Shown: one piece after another, positions 1 through 9,918 of the stretch
How positions within the stretch are numbered: the first letter of the stretch is position 1
Layout of the letters: each line of letters starts with the position of its first letter
Assembly: GCA_001600695.1 (NCBI GenBank)
Contig: BCKQ01000004.1
Location: 1,049,659 to 1,059,576, forward strand
Source of the DNA: Ascoidea asiatica JCM 7603
Taxonomy: Eukaryota > Fungi > Ascomycota
DNA length: 9,918 nucleotides
Reading direction: 5' to 3'
The notes under the pieces: generated by a model
What the model was told of the DNA's origin: nothing
The model's database searches: none
Seen by the model: the letters and a program-made list of their open reading frames with translations, nothing else
Made by a program: the position numbers and the translations under genes

Positions 1-598
1 GGAAATCCTTCATTTCCTTATCTACTTTTAGTTTACTTTAGTTTGGATTAGTCTAGCTTGGTATAGCTTATACCTTTAAGACTAGTATCTTTCCTATTTA
101 GTTTAGTATTTTTCTTCAATTTTTAGTATATTTCTTAGTATCTTATATCTTCTTTTTCTTTTCTCTTTTTTATCTTCTTATTACTTATTTCAACCTTCTA
201 CCTTTGCCTTTCTTCCTTCTTCTTTCTTTATACTTCCTTGTTATATCTTTATCATTAAGATATTCCTAGTTAGTTCCTTTTCAATATATTTCTTTTTTTT
301 TCACAAAAATATTTTCTTTTGTAGGATTTCTAAATGGATTGAAATCTAACTAGACCTTCATTAGTCATTAAAGTATTACCAATTTAAAACCACCATTTAT
401 CCCGAAGCATTAACCAAATATTTCAACCCATCAGAAGATCGAAGTTGATTATTAATTTATCCACAATGATCATTTTGTTTGAATATTTAAAATTATTTGG
501 GAATAATAAACCAATTATGTGTGTTGTTTTGGGTGTCATTTCAGATCAGAAATCGGAAAACAAAACAACAAAAAGATAAGCTAACCATAAACGGTAAT
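1..598 (+). repeat. Left arm of a large inverted repeat (partner at ~7583..8125); truncated by the window start
   Basis: Direct alignment to the reverse complement of 7583..8125. For example, 261..320 is identical to rc(7861..7920) and 507..561 is identical to rc(7621..7675). Over 201..593 I count about 11 substitutions and two 1-bp indels. Left 36..100 is absent from the right arm. Homology is still present at base 1. Confidence 0.97.
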
Positions 599-700
599 TT
601 GAACGCCAAAGCAAATTCGGTTAATTTCTTATTTTCCGAGGTATTTAGTCCCATGCTTGCCGTATTGGGCAACTTCCTCGTCCGGCGCCTGATCAGAATC

Positions 701-731
701 TTTTTGGGCTTTTTGGCTTTTTGGCTTTTTG
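701..731 (+). repeat. Short tandem repeat (TTTTTGGC)~3 in the MPS3 upstream region
   Basis: tttttgggc tttttggc tttttggc tttttg read directly. Confidence 0.8.
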
Positions 732-733
732 TT

Positions 734-742
734 TTTGTTTAC
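734..742 (-). promoter_or_regulatory. Candidate forkhead (Fkh1/Fkh2/Hcm1-type) site GTAAACAAA about 225 bp upstream of MPS3
   Basis: tttgtttac is the reverse complement of GTAAACAAA, matching the RTAAAYAA forkhead consensus. Plausible for a spindle-pole gene, but it is a short motif in AT-rich DNA. Confidence 0.3.
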
Positions 743-794
743 TTTTGCTTTTGGCGTGTTTCTTCGATGGGTTTTTAAGCGCTGACAACAGAAA

Positions 795-823
795 CACCAA
801 AAGCACCAAAAGCACCAAAAGCA
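795..823 (+). repeat. Tandem repeat (CACCAAAAG)3
   Basis: Three perfect 9-bp units at 795, 804 and 813, followed by degenerate cagcagaac. Confidence 0.9.
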
Positions 824-964
824 GCAGAACCCCCAACCCCAGCGCCAGAACCACCTTCTTTTTGTTCTCTTCTCCAGTCTTTTCTGTTATTTCTGCTATT
901 TCTGCTTTAATTCTCTTACTGCAAGCTTTTCAATGCTCCAATTATCAACTTCAAGGCCCTTGAA

Positions 965-3802
965 ATGTCATATAATAATTACTCGTTTAATAAATCTGTT
1001 CGAGATTCAATACATGATGAATTGATAAAAGATTATAATAATAACCAAAATAATAACCATAATGATAATCATGATTCCAATAATAATTCCAGTGATGAGT
1101 TCTCTGATGATCTCGATAATCACGATAATCAAGATAATCAAGATAATCAAGATAATCAAAGATATTTCAATGGTAACAACAAAGATGAAAATTTCATAAA
1201 TTATAATTATAACCCATATTCTGATGAAGAAGAGTTTATCATCGATAATATTATTCAAAATAATAGTAACAAAATCAATAAAATAAAACACAATAATCAG
1301 AATAATAACGATTCTGTCAATTCCACTTTAATTAATAACTTATACAAGCCTTCAAGAGATTATTCATTAAAATATTATACTGATAATAATGTAAATAATA
1401 ATAATAATGTTAATGGTATAACTAATAATCATAATAATAATCATAATCAAAGTAATAATGACATGCATATAAGTATAATTTCAAGTGATGAAGATGAAGA
1501 TGAAGATGAAGATGAAAATGAAGATGAAAATGAAGATGAAGTAAAAGAAGAAGAAGGTGATGAATATGATGATAACTCTAATCACACTGAACTCAATGAA
1601 GAAAATGATAATAGTGAAGATGATGAAGAAAGTGAAGAAGAAAGTGAAGATGAATACAATTCTGATGTTTCAAATCATAAAAATTATAGCTCTATACAAA
1701 AAATTCAAAATAAAAATCATAAATCTGATCATGTTACTAATAATAATTATAATAATTATAATAATTATACTGATTATACTGATTATGATAGTGATAATAC
1801 TATAGTTAATGATGATATTAATTACATTAAAAATAAATCAACTAAAAGTTTTAAAACAAAAAAAAATCAAAATAATCAAAATAAATTTAATTTAAATAAT
1901 AGATCAAGTTCAAGAGAAAAAAATCCATATAATAGAAAAAAAATTTTTACTAAAATTTATTATCCTATAAAAAAAAATCTGTTTATGTTATTAAAATATA
2001 GATTAAATTTAAATAAAAAAAATTTTTTATTATTTTTTTTTTTAATTTCAATTCTTTTCTTTATATTATTAATAACATCATTAATTTTACCAAATTTTTT
2101 CAATAAAAATTGGAATTTATATAATAATTTATTAAAGCAAATAAATTTAATTAAAAATTCAATTATTATTAAACCATTACCAATTTCAATTTCTCAAGAA
2201 AACATAATTATAAATAAATTTCAAAATGATTTAATTAATTTAAATAATAAATTTAATAGTTTAAATCATATTTTAAATAATAAATTACTAAATAATGAAT
2301 TAAATTTTAATAAAAATTTAAAAGATTTAAATTTAAAAAATAATAATTTTGATGAAAATTTTAAAAAAATAAATAAAAAATTAAATGATTTAAATGAAAA
2401 TTTAAAAATTTTAAATAATTTTAAATTGAATACTGAATCTTTATTAAATAACTTAATTACGAATCAAAATAATAATAAAAATATAAATAATGATTTAGTT
2501 TTTAAAGAATTATTAGAAATTAATTTACCTAATTATATTCCTATAATTAAAGATTCTAATGGTGATTTAAAAATAATACCAGAATTTGAAAATTATTTAA
2601 AAATTATTATTTCAAATTATATTTCAAATGAATTAAATCTTAACAACAATAATAATAATGAAATTAATAATACTGACTACAAATTATTAAAACCAATATC
2701 CTGGAATGAATTTTTGATTGAAAATAATTTGAATATAAATAAATATTTTAATAAAATTATTGACAGTAAATTTGAATTAATAAATCATAAAAATGAAGTA
2801 TTAATTAATAATTTTGATGAATTTAAAAAATTTATTTCTTTAAAAATTCAAAATAATTACAATAATTTACAAAATGAAATAATAAATAAATTAGATAATA
2901 CATCAATTAATAAATCAAGATTTAATTTAATTAATGATAATAATGAAATTATAATTAATTCAACATCAAATTTTCTAATTGAGAATTTAGTTTTAGAAAT
3001 GATTGAAAAACAGAAAAAATTGATTAAATTAAACAGTGATCCATTTTATAAATATAATTATGCATCTTTAAATAATGGATGTAGTATAATCAATTATTTA
3101 GTTTCAAGTTTTAATTCATTTAATATTACAGATTTAAATATTAAAGAAGATAAACATAAATTTAAAAATAAATTAAGTAAGATTTTGAATTTAAATTCAA
3201 AAAGACAAAAAACTTTAATTCAAACTTCATATAAAGTAATTTCAAATAATATAAATAAATTTCCAATAGATTTAATTAAAGAAAGTAGTGGTATTAAAAC
3301 ATTTGGTATAAAATTTGAAAATCCAATTTTTTTACAAGATATTTTAGTAAGTTATCCTAGATTTAAATCAAAAATAAAATTTTTAAAATCTTCACCAAAA
3401 AAAATTTCAATTTGGGTACAATTAACTAAACCAAAAAAAGATTATAAAATGTTGAAAAGCTTTTTGAAAAATTATCAAAAAAAAATATTTAATACAACTG
3501 AAAAAAAGAATTATGATATTGATTTGAATCTAAGTTTGAATGATAAAATTAATTATGAATTATTTTATGAAAAAAGATTTAGTTTAAAGGAATTAAACTT
3601 CATTAAATTAGGTACAATGATATATGATATAAATTCATTAGAAACAGAACAAAGTTTTGAAATATTAAAAGATGAAGAATTTTCCAAAATTAAATTTTTA
3701 GTGAGCTCTCTTTTCTTCTCGGTGGAATCAAATAATGGAAGTGAATCTCAAACAAATTTATTCAAATTGAAAGTATTTGGAGATGAATTGAAAAAAGCAT
3801 AA
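965..3802 (+). CDS. MPS3: SUN-domain inner nuclear membrane / spindle pole body protein (Mps3/Sad1 family), 945 aa
   Basis: Type II architecture: Asn/Asp/Glu-rich nucleoplasmic N-terminus with an acidic block (DEDEDEDEDENEDENEDEV...), a basic patch, one TM helix (aa ~354-375, FLLFFFLISILFFILLITSLIL), coiled coils, then a C-terminal SUN domain. SUN motifs recognised: YNYASLNNGCSII (cf. NYAL..GA.I), FGIKFENPIFLQDILVSYP, SSPKKISIWV (cf. SAPK.FEVW), LGTMIYDINSLETEQSFEI (cf. LG.F.YD....Q.F), SVESNNG...TNLFKLKVFG (cf. SNWG...TC.YR.RVHG). Confidence 0.88.
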   Translation: MSYNNYSFNKSVRDSIHDELIKDYNNNQNNNHNDNHDSNNNSSDEFSDDLDNHDNQDNQDNQDNQRYFNGNNKDENFINYNYNPYSDEEEFIIDNIIQNNSNKINKIKHNNQNNNDSVNSTLINNLYKPSRDYSLKYYTDNNVNNNNNVNGITNNHNNNHNQSNNDMHISIISSDEDEDEDEDENEDENEDEVKEEEGDEYDDNSNHTELNEENDNSEDDEESEEESEDEYNSDVSNHKNYSSIQKIQNKNHKSDHVTNNNYNNYNNYTDYTDYDSDNTIVNDDINYIKNKSTKSFKTKKNQNNQNKFNLNNRSSSREKNPYNRKKIFTKIYYPIKKNLFMLLKYRLNLNKKNFLLFFFLISILFFILLITSLILPNFFNKNWNLYNNLLKQINLIKNSIIIKPLPISISQENIIINKFQNDLINLNNKFNSLNHILNNKLLNNELNFNKNLKDLNLKNNNFDENFKKINKKLNDLNENLKILNNFKLNTESLLNNLITNQNNNKNINNDLVFKELLEINLPNYIPIIKDSNGDLKIIPEFENYLKIIISNYISNELNLNNNNNNEINNTDYKLLKPISWNEFLIENNLNINKYFNKIIDSKFELINHKNEVLINNFDEFKKFISLKIQNNYNNLQNEIINKLDNTSINKSRFNLINDNNEIIINSTSNFLIENLVLEMIEKQKKLIKLNSDPFYKYNYASLNNGCSIINYLVSSFNSFNITDLNIKEDKHKFKNKLSKILNLNSKRQKTLIQTSYKVISNNINKFPIDLIKESSGIKTFGIKFENPIFLQDILVSYPRFKSKIKFLKSSPKKISIWVQLTKPKKDYKMLKSFLKNYQKKIFNTTEKKNYDIDLNLSLNDKINYELFYEKRFSLKELNFIKLGTMIYDINSLETEQSFEILKDEEFSKIKFLVSSLFFSVESNNGSESQTNLFKLKVFGDELKKA

Positions 3803-3888
3803 AAGGAGAATTAAATGAATTTAAAACAATCAATAATCCATAAACTCTTCATTCAAAAAGTTATTATTTTATTTATTCACAGGGCAAG

Positions 3889-3924
3889 ATTAAAATTAAA
3901 ATTAAAATCAAAATCAAAATCAAA
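3889..3924 (+). repeat. Hexamer microsatellite (ATTAAA)3(ATCAAA)3 in the MPS3 3' region
   Basis: Read directly. Confidence 0.85.
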
Positions 3925-3962
3925 ATGAGACCAAATTTGTGGTTGTTCTTTTTTAATATCAG

Positions 3963-3981
3963 GTGACTATATCATGTGACC
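3963..3981 (-). promoter_or_regulatory. Two R-box (GTCAC) motifs, one within the E-box GGTCACATGA, about 500 bp upstream of RTG1
   Basis: GTGAC at 3963..3967 and 3976..3980; rc(3972..3981) = GGTCACATGA. GTCAC is the established Rtg1/Rtg3 R box, and GTCACATG also fits the Cbf1 consensus RTCACRTG. Confidence 0.5.
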
Positions 3982-4470
3982 GACTTTTCTTATTTAGGCT
4001 TGTTTTTGGTGCTGGCTGTTTTTGCTTTGCTTTGTTTTGATGATAGCCGGCAACAGAGCTTTATTTGGTTGAATGTGGAAGTTTGACAATCCACCACTTT
4101 AATTCTTTATCTTTTGAACTGGTCTGGTCTTTTACACACTCTTACTCTTGAATATAATAATCAATTATCGATTATTATTAATAAAATTAGGCTGATTAAT
4201 TGTATAAAGGAATTAATTATAAAGTGTAAGCAAAGGGTAATAATATAAACAAATATACTCAGAAAATAGACAGTAGCTACTTGTCCAATAACTTCTCTTA
4301 TCTGATGGTAAATAATTTGGTATTTTAATAAATAATTTTGTACAACAATATCCAATAATAATCTACAAATTACATCATAACTATTCAATACTAAATACTG
4401 GATATTCAAAAACATAAACAAATTAAACATAAATATATATATATATATTATTAATAAGCTTTCTTAAAAC

Positions 4471-6078
4471 ATGGATGCTTTTTTAAATTGGCCCGAGAGT
4501 AATAAGCAAAGCTCATATCATAGTCCAAATTTATCTCAGTTAGATGATTTATCAAATAACAATAATATCATCAATAATAATTTAAAAAATAATATTAAAG
4601 GTAATATTAAAAATAATAGTTCAAGTCCTGAAAATAATAATCAATCGATTATGAATTCAAGTGATTATTATAATGATTTCCCAAGTTTAGATAAAATTAT
4701 ATCTAATACTCAAATTAATAGCAACGATATTAATGATAATAACGAAAATCAAGTTACTTATTCTAATTCCAATTCTAATAGCAATAATAATGATTCAAAT
4801 AATCTAAATTTATCATATAATTTCACTTTAAATGATCAAAATTTATCTGGAAATAATGATATTATTACTAATAATATAAGAAAAATAAGTAGTAATAGTA
4901 ATAGTAAAAGTAATAGTATTAATACTTCCTTTAATAGTAGTACCCCTTCCCCATTACCCAATAAAAAAGACATTAAAGAAAATAAAGATAGAAAAAATAA
5001 TAGAGACATCGGAGATTCTAGTGATAATCAAAATATAAATAATAATGATAATAAAGATAGTAATGAAAATAAAGAAAAACAATTTGTTAAACAAGAATAT
5101 AATTCATTACCAACTACTCCAAATTATAATTTAAAATCAAATAAAGATTCTCCAATTAATCCTAATTCATTTAATTCAAATGGTGTAACTATTGAAAGAA
5201 AAAGAAGAGATAATATTAATGAAAAAATTCAAGAATTAGGTCAAATTATCCCTTTAACTTTTTTCACAGATTCAAAAGATAAATCATCTGGAACAAAAGA
5301 TGGTAAACCAAATAAAGGACAAATTTTATCAAAATCTGTTGAGTATATATATTTTTTACAAAATAAAATTGACGAAAAAAATTCAAAAGAGAAAAAACTT
5401 TTATTTAATTTAAAAAATTTAGAAATTAAAAAAAATTTAAATTATTTACCTAAAAATTATAATCTTAAAAAACCAAGTGATTTATTTTTTAAAAATACTT
5501 CTGCAGAAATTGGTTTAGGTAAAATTGGTGTTGGTCCTTTAGGTAATAATAATATCATTCAATTAAAATCAACAACTGCAAAAGCTTCTAAATCTAATAC
5601 AAATTCTTTAAAAAAATTAAATAATTCAATTAAAACAAATGATGATAAATCACAATCTAAAACACCAATATTACCTTCTCAATCAATTGTTAAAAATTCT
5701 GGTAAATCAGTTAATAGTAATAATAATAGTATAAATTCCTCCAGAGTTGCAACACCATCTTTTATAAATAATAATAATAATATTAATTTAAATGGTAATC
5801 CTAATAGCAATGCTAATAGTATCAATTCAAGTGCTAATGTTAAATTAGAAGATTATGATTCTAATTATAATTTTAATAATGAATTTAATATAAAATCTCC
5901 ATTAAGTGTAATTTCTCCACCACCAAGTTCATTTCCAATGAGTCAAGCAAATTCTTTTCAATCTAATAATAATCCAACTACCACCACTACTGGTACCAAT
6001 ACGATTAATAATAATAATAGTCAACAAAAGATTATTTTACCTAAAGATGAATTTACAAATTTTGATTTTAATTTATAA
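4471..6078 (+). CDS. RTG1: Retrograde regulation bHLH-Zip transcription factor Rtg1, 535 aa, with long Asn/Ser-rich extensions
   Basis: bHLH ERKRRDNINEKIQELGQIIP..FF...GTKDGKPNKGQILSKSVEYIYFLQNKID plus the Rtg1-diagnostic C-terminal motif NTSAEIGLGKIGVGPL (conserved core aa ~241-357). Confidence 0.95.
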   Translation: MDAFLNWPESNKQSSYHSPNLSQLDDLSNNNNIINNNLKNNIKGNIKNNSSSPENNNQSIMNSSDYYNDFPSLDKIISNTQINSNDINDNNENQVTYSNSNSNSNNNDSNNLNLSYNFTLNDQNLSGNNDIITNNIRKISSNSNSKSNSINTSFNSSTPSPLPNKKDIKENKDRKNNRDIGDSSDNQNINNNDNKDSNENKEKQFVKQEYNSLPTTPNYNLKSNKDSPINPNSFNSNGVTIERKRRDNINEKIQELGQIIPLTFFTDSKDKSSGTKDGKPNKGQILSKSVEYIYFLQNKIDEKNSKEKKLLFNLKNLEIKKNLNYLPKNYNLKKPSDLFFKNTSAEIGLGKIGVGPLGNNNIIQLKSTTAKASKSNTNSLKKLNNSIKTNDDKSQSKTPILPSQSIVKNSGKSVNSNNNSINSSRVATPSFINNNNNINLNGNPNSNANSINSSANVKLEDYDSNYNFNNEFNIKSPLSVISPPPSSFPMSQANSFQSNNNPTTTTTGTNTINNNNSQQKIILPKDEFTNFDFNL

Positions 6079-6352
6079 GACATAATTTATGAATCTAATT
6101 AATAATGAAATGATAATGATGATGATGATTTTATATTCTTGAATCTTAATGATTTTATTTTTGCTTTATTTTGCTTTAATTTTTAATTTTTAATTTTTAT
6201 TATATTTTTTATTTTTTTATTTTTTATTTAATTTTACCTTTTTTTTTGATGATCTTCATATATAATAGTAGTATAATATGTAATAATTATATAATATATT
6301 GTATACAGTATATAATATATATTATATGTAAAAATATTATTGAATAAAAATT
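6079..6352. terminator. Shared convergent 3'-end/termination region of RTG1 and SFT2
   Basis: Short spacer between converging stop codons, with T-rich tracts (6170..6250) and TA-rich TATATA/TATGTA-like efficiency elements (6260..6330). Confidence 0.55.
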
Positions 6353-7105
6353 TTAAGAGGAAATCCAATTTTCAGCTTGATTATAGGCAACATTTGATAC
6401 AAGTCTTAAAGTTTGTTTACCCATAGGAAAATAACTAACTATATACCAAATAATTGAAATTAATTGAATAATTGCAAAAATTATTGATAAAATTAAATTT
6501 TTTAAGACTAAAGAAGAAATTAAAGTTAAAATTATAGAAGTTAAAAAAGAAAAAGTGAATAAATATCTTTCTTTTGAAAATAAATGCAATACATAATTTT
6601 TAAAACCTTGTAAAAATGAAAAACTTATAATAAAAAAAATAGAACCTAAAGACCATAAAACTGCAAATTTTCTTGGTTTTAAAGTTAGTATTGGAAACAT
6701 AAATATTGAAATTAAGAAACAAGAAATTGAAGCAGCAAAAAAAATTGCAAATATTAACATTCTTTCAAATTTTGTTAAATTTAATAAACCTGGATCATCA
6801 GAAATTGAATTATTAATTTCTCTTTCTTCTCTTCTTAATCTTTGATTATCAGTTACTGTTGGAAGTAAAATTCTACCATGATCATTTCTTGAAGAAAATG
6901 GATTATATTTTTGTAATTTATCTTTTAAATTTTTTCTTGTTTCTCCAGTACTTGAAGAACTATTAGGTATTGGTAGTGGTAATTGTGAAGATGATGGTGA
7001 TGAAGATAATAATGGATTATTACTCTCTTCTTGACTTAAAGAAGAATATGAAGGATCATTGTTTTTACCAGGAGTAACTTTTTTAAAAAAATCTTTTATA
7101 GGCAT
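6353..7105 (-). CDS. SFT2: Got1/Sft2-family late-Golgi tetraspan vesicle transport protein, 250 aa
   Basis: Family motifs LTKFERMLIF..F...CF, FPILTLKPRKFAVLWSLGS, YVLHLFSKER, TL..SL..KN.ILS, IQ....WY.VSYFPMG; four hydrophobic segments. Confidence 0.95.
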   Translation of the reverse strand: MPIKDFFKKVTPGKNNDPSYSSLSQEESNNPLLSSSPSSSQLPLPIPNSSSSTGETRKNLKDKLQKYNPFSSRNDHGRILLPTVTDNQRLRREEREINNSISDDPGLLNLTKFERMLIFAIFFAASISCFLISIFMFPILTLKPRKFAVLWSLGSIFFIISFSFLQGFKNYVLHLFSKERYLFTFSFLTSIILTLISSLVLKNLILSIIFAIIQLISIIWYIVSYFPMGKQTLRLVSNVAYNQAENWISS

Positions 7106-7334
7106 CTTAATTAATTAGAATTTATAACGGAAATAAAATCAATAGATTCATTGTCTTCCAAACCAAAGTATGAGTATGAAATACTTTAACATCAAATCTT
7201 TCTTGATTCAACAACTGGTCAATAATTAAAGCTTTCAAGTAAAACAAATTCTAAATTTATTCTCATTCATCTAAAATGATTGATAATTATCACAATATAA
7301 CAAAATTACCAAATAGTTAACAAAATACTTATCT

Positions 7335-7580
7335 AACCACGGGCTTGGGTCTGGGCTTAACTCCTCCAGATTTCCCGATATCAACAAAAACAAAACCCGC
7401 AAATATTTACATATAAGCAAATGCTCACATAATTATTTTAGTACGGAGATATCCGCAAAACTACTACCGCCCCAAATTCAAGTAAATTATCGGGTACGCA
7501 ATAACAGAATTTAGGAATCCGGATTTGTGCAGCACGATGGGTAAGCTGTGGCGCATTACCGTAAACATAAACCGGAAGAG
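7335..7580. promoter_or_regulatory. Relatively GC-rich SFT2 upstream region with several CGG/CCG triplets (candidate Zn2Cys6 factor sites)
   Basis: CGG-N6-CCG (CGGAGATATCCG) at 7444..7455, palindrome AATCCGGATT at 7516..7525, and further CCG/CGG triplets near 7375, 7397, 7467, 7491, 7559 and 7572. Confidence 0.35.
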
Positions 7581-7582
7581 AA

Positions 7583-8125
7583 TTTATCGTTTATGGTTAG
7601 CTTATCTTTTTGTTTATTTTGTTTTCCGATTTCTGATCTGAAATGACACCCAAAACAACACACATAATTGGTTTAATATTCCCAAATAATTTTAAATATT
7701 TAAACAAAATGATCATTGTGGATAAAATAATGGTCAACTTCGATCTTCTGATGGGTTGAAATATTTGGTTAATGCTTCGGGATAAATGGTGGTTTTGAAT
7801 TGGTAATACTTGAATGACTAATGAAGGTCTAGTTGGATTTCAATCCATTAGAAATCCTACAAAAGAAAATATTTTTGTGAAAAAAAAAGAAATATATTGA
7901 AAAGGAACTAACTAGGAATATCTTAATGATAAAGATATAAAAAGGAAGTATAAAGAAAGAAGAAAGAAGAAAGGCAAAGGGGGAAGATTGAAATAAGTAA
8001 TAAGAAGATGAAAAAGAGAAAAGAAAAGAAAAGAAAAGAAGATATAAGATACTAAGAAATATACTAAAAATTGAAGAAAAATACTAAACTAAACTAAAAG
8101 TAGATAAAGAAATGATAGGATTCCC
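7583..8125 (-). repeat. Right arm of the large inverted repeat (partner 1..~598); may extend further right
   Basis: Its reverse complement aligns with 1..598. It has a longer (GAAAA)n microsatellite at ~8018..8040 and lacks left-arm 36..100. Confidence 0.97.
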
Positions 8126-8272
8126 ATAACTATTGAAATTCTAATTGCCTATAATGAATGAAAAATGGGATTTATAAATGATAAATTAAAATTTTTAATT
8201 GATTAATGTCAGTTTTGAATAATGGATGGGAGTCTTAATTGTTATTTGAAAATTACGATAGATATAATTGAA

Positions 8273-8689
8273 TTAATTTAATTGTTTCTTGGTAATTTTC
8301 AACATTTCTTCGATTATCATCTTCTCTTTTATTTTAAGTTCCAACATCATTTTTTTTGTGGTGACTTGAAAAATAAAAGAAAGTGTGGTTTTTTTTTTAT
8401 CTTCTGCTTTTTCCAATTTTGCTTCTTCTTCGAGCAATACTTTAAGCTCATTCAAAAGGTGTTTTAATTTCTCGATTTCTTTAGTTCCAGCTTCACTTTG
8501 TTTTTTTTTTACATCTTTTTTTCTGTTTTTTTTTTTTCTTTTCACAAGTATTTGAAATCTGTTTTTTATATTTCTATGAGTTTGGGCGATAAGTTTAAAC
8601 TCTGTTTTTACTATACTTGATGTATTTAAATCATTTTCTTTTTGTTTCTCCTCAGGTGAACCAATTAATTTTTTCTCTTTTTCAATCAT
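8273..8689 (-). CDS. Hypothetical Lys/Glu-rich, possibly coiled-coil ORF, 138 aa; may be a degenerate gene fragment
   Basis: Open frame with a heptad-like stretch (EIEKLKHLLNELKVLLEEEAKLEKAE). Much of it is encoded by long A-runs and I recognise no family motif. Confidence 0.3.
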   Translation of the reverse strand: MIEKEKKLIGSPEEKQKENDLNTSSIVKTEFKLIAQTHRNIKNRFQILVKRKKKNRKKDVKKKQSEAGTKEIEKLKHLLNELKVLLEEEAKLEKAEDKKKTTLSFIFQVTTKKMMLELKIKEKMIIEEMLKITKKQLN

Positions 8690-9059
8690 TCTGATTGTTT
8701 AATAATTAAAAATTACTATTTTAGAATAATTATGAGAAAAATGAGAAAAAAATGTGAGTTTAAATAGAAAAAAAATGAAAGGATATTTGAAATCAGAAAT
8801 GAAATATCATAAATTGGTGGATATGGGCAAAATGGTGCAGATTACAATCAGTGTTAAGTTTGCTCAACTAATTTCCATTCATTTATGAAAATCAATTCAA
8901 TGAATAAATGAAGATAAGAATCATTCACTTCATTTTTGAAGAGTCAAGTTTTGTTTCACAATTAAAATAATTAAAGCACTATTACTTGTGGTTTTTGTTA
9001 ATTATTTTCTCTTTATTATTTCCTTTTTTACGTAGATTTATTTATTTGTTTATTTCATT

Positions 9060-9577
9060 CCCCAATATACTTGAATAAGTATGGCTATGCTGCCACAATC
9101 TATAAGAACCTGTTTGGGATTTAGTAGTGTTTCTATTAAACCATGGGCTCTTTTTTGGGTAAATAATATCAATTACTACTTATTTCTACTGCTATGTTAT
9201 TATTCGCCTACTTTCCTTTGTTGTCTGAGCTGCTGTTGCTATCACTCTGGCTTTTAGTAAAACAATTCGGTTTGTTGGATTGTATTACGATGGATATCAA
9301 TCAGCTGTTGATTCAGAATTTAATTTAATAATTTGTTATTCAAATTTCTTTTGACGAATTTCAGTTCTCCTTTTGGGACGCTGTTCAAGGATTGGGATAG
9401 TCTATTGGTATTGATTTCTTTTTCAAGACTGAATGTACAGAATGATTGGTAGTTCAGGTAATGTTATGCTTTGGATCCAAATGGGCTAGAGAACATTTTG
9501 TCTCTGACTGATTTGAATTATTGAAGTGATACGATTTTGGCAAGTGATAGATTGATGAAAGTGAAAAGGAATATCAT
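9060..9577 (-). pseudogene. Possible decayed coding relic of unknown origin
   Basis: More GC-rich than its flanks. Minus-strand frames give protein-like peptides broken by stops (e.g. WIQSITLPELPIILYIQS*KRNQYQ*TIPILEQRPKRRTEIRQKKFE*QIIKLNSESTAD*). No family recognised. Confidence 0.18.
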
Positions 9578-9699
9578 AGAATAATTGAGAATAATAGGTA
9601 AAACTAAAATATAGTATGGGTAAAAAATAATATTAAATTAAATCTAAAAATAGGGTATGTTGTAGAGAGATAAATAATAAAGCGAAATAGAAAAAGAAA

Positions 9700-9734
9700 G
9701 ATAAAAGGTAAATGATAAAAGGTAAACGATAAAA
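9700..9734 (+). repeat. 14-bp tandem repeat GATAAAAGGTAAAY x2.5
   Basis: gataaaaggtaaat gataaaaggtaaac gataaaa read directly. Confidence 0.85.
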
Positions 9735-9918
9735 AGAAAAGTGTAATAAATGTCTGAGAGATAAATTTGAAAGGGAATTGAATCTAAACCATTATTTATT
9801 TGCGCACTGATCAATAAGAAACTTTATGAGAATTGGAATAGAAATGCAGAAATATTATTTTGGGTGCAGGCTAAAGTGGAAGAAAATTGATTAGTACAAA
9901 CCGCATTTCTCGCTCATT

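Follow-up and report, generated by a model that had tools for sequence, protein, structure and literature searches.

The inverted repeat that brackets the MPS3-like, RTG1-like and SFT2 genes of Ascoidea asiatica is most probably (we would put it at about three in four) two members of a small family of duplicated intergenic DNA that is strictly confined to one region of a chromosome, i.e., a passive structural feature rather than a switch, transposon or centromere. The window, by which we mean the whole analyzed stretch of 9918 nucleotides, lies on scaffold C4 as a single contig with an assembly gap on each side, and it begins at its position 1 because the contig begins there, after a run of 5225 Ns. 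The features of the window and the three copies of the repeat (A, B, and C) are listed below; coordinates are those of the window unless preceded by C4.

1..600, plus strand: left arm (copy B), non-coding, with 365 bp between its inner end and the start codon of the downstream MPS3-like gene
33..97, plus strand: 65-bp segment, found in copies B and A and missing from the right arm, with a short direct repeat at its borders
601..964, plus strand: upstream region of the MPS3-like gene, unique, outside the repeat, relatively GC-rich (~38% GC) and without a match in BLAST
965..3802, plus strand: MPS3-like gene, 945 aa, with a C-terminal SUN (Sad1/UNC) domain (Pfam PF07738, E = 4e-6)
4471..6078, plus strand: RTG1-like bHLH gene, 535 aa (Pfam PF00010, E = 3e-12)
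6353..7105, minus strand: SFT2 gene, 250 aa (Pfam PF04178, E = 2.6e-32)
7106..7580, minus strand: upstream region of SFT2, unique, with a short hairpin-like insert at the inner edge of the arm
7581..8125, minus strand: right arm (copy C), oriented to SFT2 as the left arm is to MPS3
8126..8668, no strand assigned: copy-specific spacer between the arm and the second module, with a Lys/Glu-rich orphan ORF (8273-8689, minus strand) that has no family match
8669..9918, plus strand: second repeat module (seg3), near-identical to C4:1016065-1017233 from ~8750 onward
C4:1015095-1018429: copy A
C4:1043083 onward into the gap (an old full unit), together with the left arm of the window: copy B
Right arm of the window and the sequence following it, to C4:1060685: copy C

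A repeat search and BLAST revealed that the left arm is the reverse complement of the right arm (E = 7e-231 for the inverted repeat in the whole-genome BLAST). In a global alignment of positions 1-600 with the reverse complement of 7581-8125, identity reached 96.4% (515 of 534 aligned bases), with 19 mismatches and five indels of 65, 9, 1, 1, and 1 bp, or 84% when gap columns were counted. The 65 bp occur in the left arm only and the 9 bp in the right arm only, and the longest perfect run common to both arms is 91 bp. The 65-bp difference would fit a slippage deletion in the right arm, given the short direct repeat bounding this segment. The divergence between B and C is even along the arm, and alignments of the arms of all three copies contained no exchange tract specific to B and C; as read from these alignments, there is no recent exchange between the two arms bracketing the gene block. 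The arm ends are discrete in all copies. In copies A and C, the outer end coincides to the base with window position 1, and the flanks beyond it are unrelated to each other. The original prediction, made from the letters of the window, had described 1..~598 and ~7583..8125 as reverse complements of ~97% identity with a 65-bp indel, and had argued that this divergence (~3%) and the indel speak against frequent homogenizing inversion; all of this agrees with the present results. The accompanying suggestion that the homology runs to the window edge, so that the arms may be longer, does not hold, since the arm stops at the equivalent of position 1 in the two other copies.

Between the arms there are exactly three long ORFs, each with a Pfam match (Sad1_UNC, HLH, and Got1/Sft2), which confirms the earlier statement that three intact genes are enclosed and that the cargo contains neither a MAT gene nor a transposase. 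The same three genes are adjacent in Ascoidea rubescens, where no repeat was found within 10 kb on either side; the A. asiatica repeat is, in other words, not conserved at the A. rubescens locus. The encoded proteins share 46% (MPS3-like protein and the product of the A. rubescens neighbor gene), 62% (RTG1-like protein and the A. rubescens bHLH gene product) and 64% identity (SFT2 protein and A. rubescens Sft2p). Among the four genomes compared, adjacency of the trio was limited to the two Ascoidea species, and the SFT2 neighborhoods in the two more distant yeasts contained neither RTG1 nor MPS3. The MPS3 gene has the opposite orientation in A. rubescens, and the inversion that distinguishes the two species comprises MPS3 alone and not the whole block. 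The A. asiatica orthologs of the genes neighboring the trio in A. rubescens also map to scaffold C4, one at 828 kb and the other at 1262 kb, and are not adjacent to each other. As these former neighbors have stayed on one scaffold, the changed surroundings of the trio indicate, judging from gene order, intrachromosomal scrambling rather than transposition.

BLAST searches against the 20.3-Mb genome placed all relatives of the arm at sites of C4 within 45 kb of one another and on an unplaced 4.4-kb contig (C61), the sole further match being 72 bp at 78% identity on contig C3. The basic unit of the family is ~3.4 kb long and non-coding, and consists of the 0.6-kb arm, a copy-specific spacer and a second module of ~2.4 kb (seg3 and seg4). 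Copies of this module are as local as those of the arm: the C3 match excepted, all of them, arm and module alike, are found at C4 1.015-1.061 Mb or on C61. Whole or partial copies of the unit occupy three islands without genes, each 7-8 kb long, within the 45 kb. The right arm of the window is part of an intact unit, in which the second module runs past position 9918, across a closable 100-N gap, for ~1 kb (seg4), while the left arm stands alone; the second module is also present to the left of the 5225-N gap. Two independent insertions of a multicopy repeat, offered in the original prediction as the mundane alternative, do not agree with a family of which every copy is local, and the many dispersed arm copies that it allowed for are absent, apart from the short match on C3.

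There is also a further inverted pair of 3.18 kb (C4:1019372-1022555 and C61:1234-4416), identical at every called base except for a 1-nt indel. An older layer is present as well: contig C61 runs colinear with a complete unit, the arm of which is no more than 62-75% similar to the present arms. A. asiatica NRRL Y-17576, almost certainly the strain analyzed, was described as a heterothallic diploid (PMC6692504), and for this reason some of what look like copies, most of all C61, could reflect structural differences between homologs instead of paralogs.

The comparison of the copies revealed that they are mosaics, in which stretches of ~99-100% identity stand beside stretches of 55-88%. Within the arm, bases 1-331 are identical in B and A (C4:1015095-1015445), and C differs from them at eight sites and by two indels. 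In seg3, copies A and C match in 1162 of 1169 columns, with one true mismatch and six N calls in the other copy. In columns 150-600 of seg4, copies A and B are 98-99% alike, and are 92% similar to C, whereas beyond column 600 every pair falls to 55-88%. The spacers of copies A and C did not show significant homology (z ~2.9). Such mosaic identity points to repeated ectopic gene conversion. It must be added that the consensus of copy A contains 17 single-N calls, all within the repeated segments, so that some of its near-identity to other copies may stem from the assembly, in which reads of several copies could have been merged.

As regards coding content, Pfam searches with the ORFs of the repeats yielded orphan ORFs only, without family matches. 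One ORF is common to copies A and B, with 64% protein identity at ~84% DNA identity, a relation by which it looks neutrally evolving. Rfam screening of the window and four flanking 10-kb stretches gave no match except one tRNA far from the repeats, and ARAGORN, with which contig C61 was also scanned, detected no tRNA. A retroelement origin of the repeats was considered and rejected, as no reverse transcriptase (RT) or integrase is encoded nearby.

Gene conversion and non-allelic homologous recombination act on low-copy repeats, and staggered breaks leave inverted duplications at inversion breakpoints. The A. asiatica pair is best placed in this class of low-copy repeats, or segmental duplications with gene conversion: the copies are few, non-mobile and locally clustered (three units and partial or older copies within 45 kb), they consist of ordinary sequence, their identity is a patchwork, and the inverted pairs are able to mediate or mark inversions, with no difference in kind. 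The copies would go back to segmental duplication that was local and partly inverted, in the course of an inversion or of break repair, and would later have overwritten each other in patches through ectopic gene conversion, the B and C arms coming to bracket MPS3-RTG1-SFT2 by happenstance. A crossover between these two arms would invert the 7-kb block; in view of their identity, their five indels and the lack of a perfect run above 91 bp, such an event is expected to be rare. Its regulatory effect would presumably be small, because each gene would retain its own 365-476 bp of unique upstream DNA together with the inner part of an arm. Of the invertible or mobile cassette originally predicted, it is this passive invertibility that stands, as a deduction from the geometry of the arms; a programmed flip/flop and a mobile cassette are unsupported, for the reasons presented below.

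Another reading is that the arms are the scar of one past inversion, in which staggered breaks were filled in, the breakpoint sequence was thereby duplicated in inverted orientation at both ends, and the arms then diverged. The different flanks of the block in A. rubescens, with MPS3 opposite there, the even B-C divergence without an exchange tract, and the position of the right arm in an intact unit while the left arm is solitary are all in line with such a history. However, it covers the origin of the arms only (and is to that extent compatible with the local duplication proposed above), it leaves the third copy and the older layer of copies unexplained, and the inversion separating the two species involves MPS3 only. 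We regard it as improbable.

An origin of the arms from a mobile element is highly improbable, whether as the terminal repeats of a transposon (composite or cargo-carrying) or as a pair of solo LTRs left by a retrotransposon now extinct. Cargo genes lie between two opposed copies of a sequence, as they do in a composite transposon or a pair of solo LTRs; the discrete arm ends, the TGG at the outer end of copies A and C, and the many decayed retrotransposons in the genome also speak for this origin. In contrast to such elements, there is no dispersed family, no transposase, RT or integrase was found in or near the copies by Pfam searches of the repeat ORFs, and scans with the RVT_2 and rve profiles gave no match between C4 809 kb and 1494 kb. 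The inner arm end lacks the CA terminus of an LTR, and no short duplication is shared by the flanks of copy C (on the outer side of the left arm, ~0.9 kb falls inside the 5225-N gap). Finally, the supposed cargo is an ancestral neighborhood, adjacent in A. rubescens without repeats, and the former neighbors of the trio are not joined to each other in A. asiatica. On these grounds, the mobile cassette put forward in the original prediction is not supported.

Very little credence can be given to a programmed switch, in which regulated recombination of the arms would invert the block and change the expression of MPS3, SFT2 or a flanking gene, in the manner of MAT inversion in Ogataea, Komagataella, and A. 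rubescens. Flip/flop (FF1) MAT loci were described in Ogataea polymorpha, Komagataella phaffii, Pachysolen tannophilus, and A. rubescens, the last, a sister species, having 2-kb repeats (PMC6692504). The A. asiatica locus resembles them in that an inverted repeat pair encloses a discrete multi-gene segment, invertible by homologous recombination, and exchange of sequence does occur among the copies in this region. Yet FF1 loci have MATa and MATalpha at their ends, beside or overlapping the repeats, whereas the repeat borders in A. asiatica are devoid of MAT genes: genome-wide six-frame scans gave no alpha1, HMG-box or homeodomain match near the locus (the nearest being at C4 178 kb). In FF1 loci one repeat lies beside a telomere or centromere, while the A. 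asiatica arms adjoin neither a telomere nor a known centromere, the locus being situated ~490 kb from the nearer scaffold end (1.05 Mb of the 1.55-Mb C4), with no retroelement cluster beside it in the 80 kb examined. FF1 repeats are, moreover, kept identical or nearly so by frequent exchange; the A. asiatica arms measure 0.6 kb, are 3.6% diverged with their indels, and lack a B-C conversion tract. After a flip, both genes would also retain ~1 kb of equivalent upstream sequence. The absence of MAT-type genes and of a telomere, and arms that are not near-identical, leave the flip/flop candidate of the original prediction without support. A link of the region to MAT was likewise rejected, as MAT-alpha1 is carried by contig C50, which has no sequence in common with it.

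Regional centromeres of K. phaffii and Candida tropicalis consist of chromosome-specific inverted repeats around a central segment of a few kb, a layout to which that of A. asiatica is similar. The locality of the repeats and the three unusual gene-free islands within 45 kb could suggest a centromere-associated structure of this type, or a pericentric repeat nest, and our literature search found no report mapping Ascoidea centromeres. In A. asiatica, however, the center is a 7-kb segment with three intact conserved genes, and the repeats, with 26-38% GC, are GC-richer than the neighboring genes and form no AT trough. Remnants of Ty1/copia RT or integrase were not found within the 80 kb examined, and clusters of them occur elsewhere, including C4 1.49-1.55 Mb. 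In S. schoenii, a related yeast of the same order (Ascoideales), centromeres were reported as AT-rich cores of 26-34 kb with decayed Copia remnants on three chromosomes (PMC13148404). A centromeric role is as doubtful as a programmed switch.

That the left arm was wrongly joined to the MPS3 upstream region by the assembler is scarcely credible: although this arm starts at a contig end beside the 5.2-kb gap, and other gaps and N calls are present in the region, the arms are both within a single contig without gaps, an assembler would be able to tell them apart by a difference about every 28 bases, and 96-97% of the sampled words of the window were present in sequencing runs from two studies.

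Taken alone, a local family of duplicated intergenic DNA carries little weight, being one more low-copy inverted duplication, and its value is modest and lies in the context. Numerous macro-palindromes were reported in S. schoenii, most of them without a link to MAT and scattered over the chromosomes, from which the authors inferred a genomic tendency to form them (PMC13148404). The likeness to A. asiatica consists in large, mostly MAT-unlinked inverted repeats in a related yeast. The flagship palindrome of S. schoenii includes MAT genes and has 8.5-kb arms of 99.98% identity, separated by a 2-kb spacer (PMC13148404); the A. asiatica pair, in comparison, is short, diverged and MAT-free. For the flip/flop mating-type switches of budding yeasts, 10-11 origins were inferred, one of them in A. 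rubescens (PMC6692504), and a genome that often forms inverted duplications, with exchange of sequence continuing among them, would reveal the source of the repeats in such switches. It is conceivable, but rather unlikely, that a hotspot of ectopic exchange is active in the 45-kb stretch of C4, that both orientations of the MPS3-RTG1-SFT2 block and of the upstream 23-34 kb segments between near-identical inverted copies may occur, be it within one isolate or among isolates, and that a genome-wide tendency toward inverted duplication was the raw material for the A. rubescens flip/flop MAT switch.

The analysis also has a practical yield for the assembly: two 100-N gaps can be closed via exact overlaps, and contig C61 probably fills most of the 5225-N gap to the left of the window.

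The two arms that bracket the MPS3-RTG1-SFT2 block belong, as one pair, to a local nest of duplicated intergenic DNA. The global alignment of the left arm (copy B, window positions 1-600) with the reverse complement of the right arm (copy C, 7581-8125) comprised 515 matches, 19 mismatches, and five indels (65, 9, 1, 1, and 1 bp), i.e., 96.4% identity at aligned bases, with the mismatches distributed evenly from base 3 to base 598 and a longest perfect run of 91 bp. This alignment, in which the previously noticed 65-bp indel was recovered, and three gene-family assignments confirmed that a real inverted repeat encloses three intact genes:

MPS3-like gene, encoding a SUN-domain protein of 945 aa
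RTG1-like gene, encoding a bHLH protein of 535 aa
SFT2 gene, encoding an Sft2 protein of 250 aa (best match: Sft2 of Ascoidea rubescens, 64% identical)

Both arms are localized upstream of their inward-facing gene in identical relative orientation, and are separated from it by 365 bp (MPS3) and 476 bp (SFT2) of unique DNA. A GC-rich tract with short tandem motifs (window 700-860, ~38% GC in a ~20% setting) lies shortly before the MPS3-like start codon, outside the repeat. The right arm has a short hairpin-like insert at its inner edge (window 7555-7600; a 7-base inverted motif around ~20 bases), which is absent from the left arm and possibly followed by a few further bases of homology.

The arm was then compared with the whole genome (20.3 Mb in 71 records), and the related segments of scaffold C4 (BCKQ01000004.1; 1.55 Mb) and of the unplaced 4416-bp contig C61 are as follows:

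C4:1015095-1015445, copy A of the arm (bases 1-352, 99% identity)
C4:1021732-1022033 and on C61, older arm copies (62-79% identity)
window 8669-9918 (seg3) and ~1 kb past the adjoining 100-N gap (seg4), second repeat module
C4:1015991-1018429, seg3 and seg4 in direct orientation
C4:1043083-1044433, second module in inverted orientation, immediately left of a 5225-N gap
C4:1019372-1022555, segment D (3.18 kb)
C61:1234-4416, reverse complement of segment D, matching at every called base except for a 1-nt indel

The only other arm match genome-wide was a 72-bp one (78%) on C3. The arm is thus a discrete, low-copy, local module, and the mundane alternative of two insertions of a multicopy repeat is not upheld, as its copies are few and local. 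The original prediction also noted that homology reaches the window edge and that the arms may be longer. In copies A and C it stops at the base matching window position 1, outside of which their flanks are unrelated to each other; hence, the arm does not simply extend beyond the window. Furthermore, a complete old unit (arm, spacer, and module) is colinear with C61; the arm of that unit is only 62-75% like the present ones.

The window (C4:1049659-1059576) is a single contig of the scaffold, preceded by 5225 N and followed by 100 N. Each of the two 100-N gaps (C4:1015489-1015588 and C4:1059577-1059676, the latter at the window end) lies between exactly overlapping ends (95 and 134 bp), so that there is effectively no break in the sequence and both gaps could be closed simply by joining the overlaps. 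C61 probably fills 4.3 kb of the 5225-N gap, since its first 95 bp match exactly the 95 bp that border the gap on its left (C4:1044339-1044433). If so, the two D copies would make up a young inverted pair of 3.2 kb, with seven or eight genes in the ~23 kb between them. The copy A region (C4:1015963-1022203) accounts for all 17 single-N calls in the 80 kb examined, each of them within a repeated segment, which means that the near-identities of copy A should be read with caution, as several copies or two homologues may be merged. In segment D (7 N calls, all on the C4 side) and in the near-identical stretch of seg3 (6 N calls), they coincide with the sole base differences from the sister copies, which suggests that reads of paralogues or homologues were merged. 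Of the sampled words of the window, 96-97% were present in three sequencing runs from two studies; the window sequence itself is therefore reproducible.

The identity among copies proved to be a mosaic. Over 331 bp of the arm, A and B do not differ, while C departs from them at eight sites and by two indels; a single true mismatch separates A from C across 1169 columns of seg3. In the alignment of the seg3 end and seg4, A equals C over the first 150 columns, A and B share 98-99% and A and C 92% identity in columns 150-600, and past column 600 every pair falls to 55-88%. Copies B and C, which bracket the gene block, are never the closest pair. At least three age layers are distinguishable (~62-75%, ~92-96%, and ~99-100% identity), and such a patchwork is what would be expected of ectopic gene conversion among low-copy repeats. 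The arms may have arisen as an inverted segmental duplication, made in the course of break repair or inversion, with patchy gene conversion among the copies since then, and the 7-kb block could on rare occasions invert passively. Numerous macro-palindromes have been described in S. schoenii (PMC13148404).

A regulated switch, in which the block would flip between two orientations, is unlikely, as the arms have diverged, neither a telomere nor, within the 80 kb examined, a retroelement cluster lies near them, and after a flip ~1 kb of equivalent upstream DNA would remain in front of each gene. A. asiatica is classified as a heterothallic diploid with its MAT locus between ADR1 and MHP1 (Krassowski et al., PMC6692504). 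The contig carrying MAT-alpha1 (C50, 11.8 kb) has no sequence in common with the repeat region, and all HMG-box and homeodomain matches lie away from the locus. MAT-alpha1 itself (C50:5663-6424; PF04769, E = 3e-13) agrees with the published alpha allele of the diploid heterothallic strain, and the adjoining 1144-aa ORF (C50:1450-4884, minus strand) may be an allele-specific STE20.

A centromeric role of the inverted repeat is likewise unlikely. Centromeres of the related Saccharomycopsis are reported to have AT-rich cores bearing decayed Copia remnants, whereas the core between the arms is packed with genes and shows no AT enrichment; decayed Copia clusters occur elsewhere, including the end of scaffold C4. 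These Ty1/copia reverse transcriptase and integrase clusters (C4 1.49-1.55 Mb, C11 577-634 kb, C1 1.94-1.97 Mb, C14 290-358 kb, and C7 754-822 kb), seemingly one main cluster per scaffold on several scaffolds, could mark pericentric regions by analogy with those reported for Saccharomycopsis.

A transposon or solo-LTR origin of the arms is unlikely too, given that the family is not dispersed and the repeats are devoid of element features. No repeat ORF matched a Pfam family, and no RVT_2 or rve match was found from 809 kb to 1494 kb of C4. The ORF common to copies A and B is not under selection, judging from 64% protein identity at ~84% DNA identity. ARAGORN, run on the window, four flanking stretches, and C61, revealed no tRNA, and the Rfam search of the window and these flanks gave a single tRNA, far from the repeats, and nothing else. 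The repeats (26-38% GC) exceed the Asn-rich genes around them in GC content. A GC-rich, Pro/Ser/Ala-rich 69-aa ORF (C4:1061509-1061718, minus strand) without a Pfam match lies ~0.8 kb outward of copy C and ends in CCGCVIM, a Ras-like palmitoylation and CAAX tail.

The idea of a mobile cassette is not supported, because the repeats carry no transposition genes, their family is not dispersed, and the trio is already adjacent, without the repeat, in A. rubescens (KV454484.1:424285-444986), where no direct or inverted repeat of at least 60 bp was found within 10 kb on either side. There, MPS3 is reversed relative to RTG1-SFT2, so a single-gene inversion separates the two species at the trio. Orthologues of the genes flanking the A. 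rubescens trio also map to scaffold C4 of A. asiatica, at 828 kb and 1262 kb, which indicates that internal rearrangements have scrambled the chromosome rather than that the trio was moved as a cassette. SFT2 has different neighbors in two yeasts that are more distantly related.
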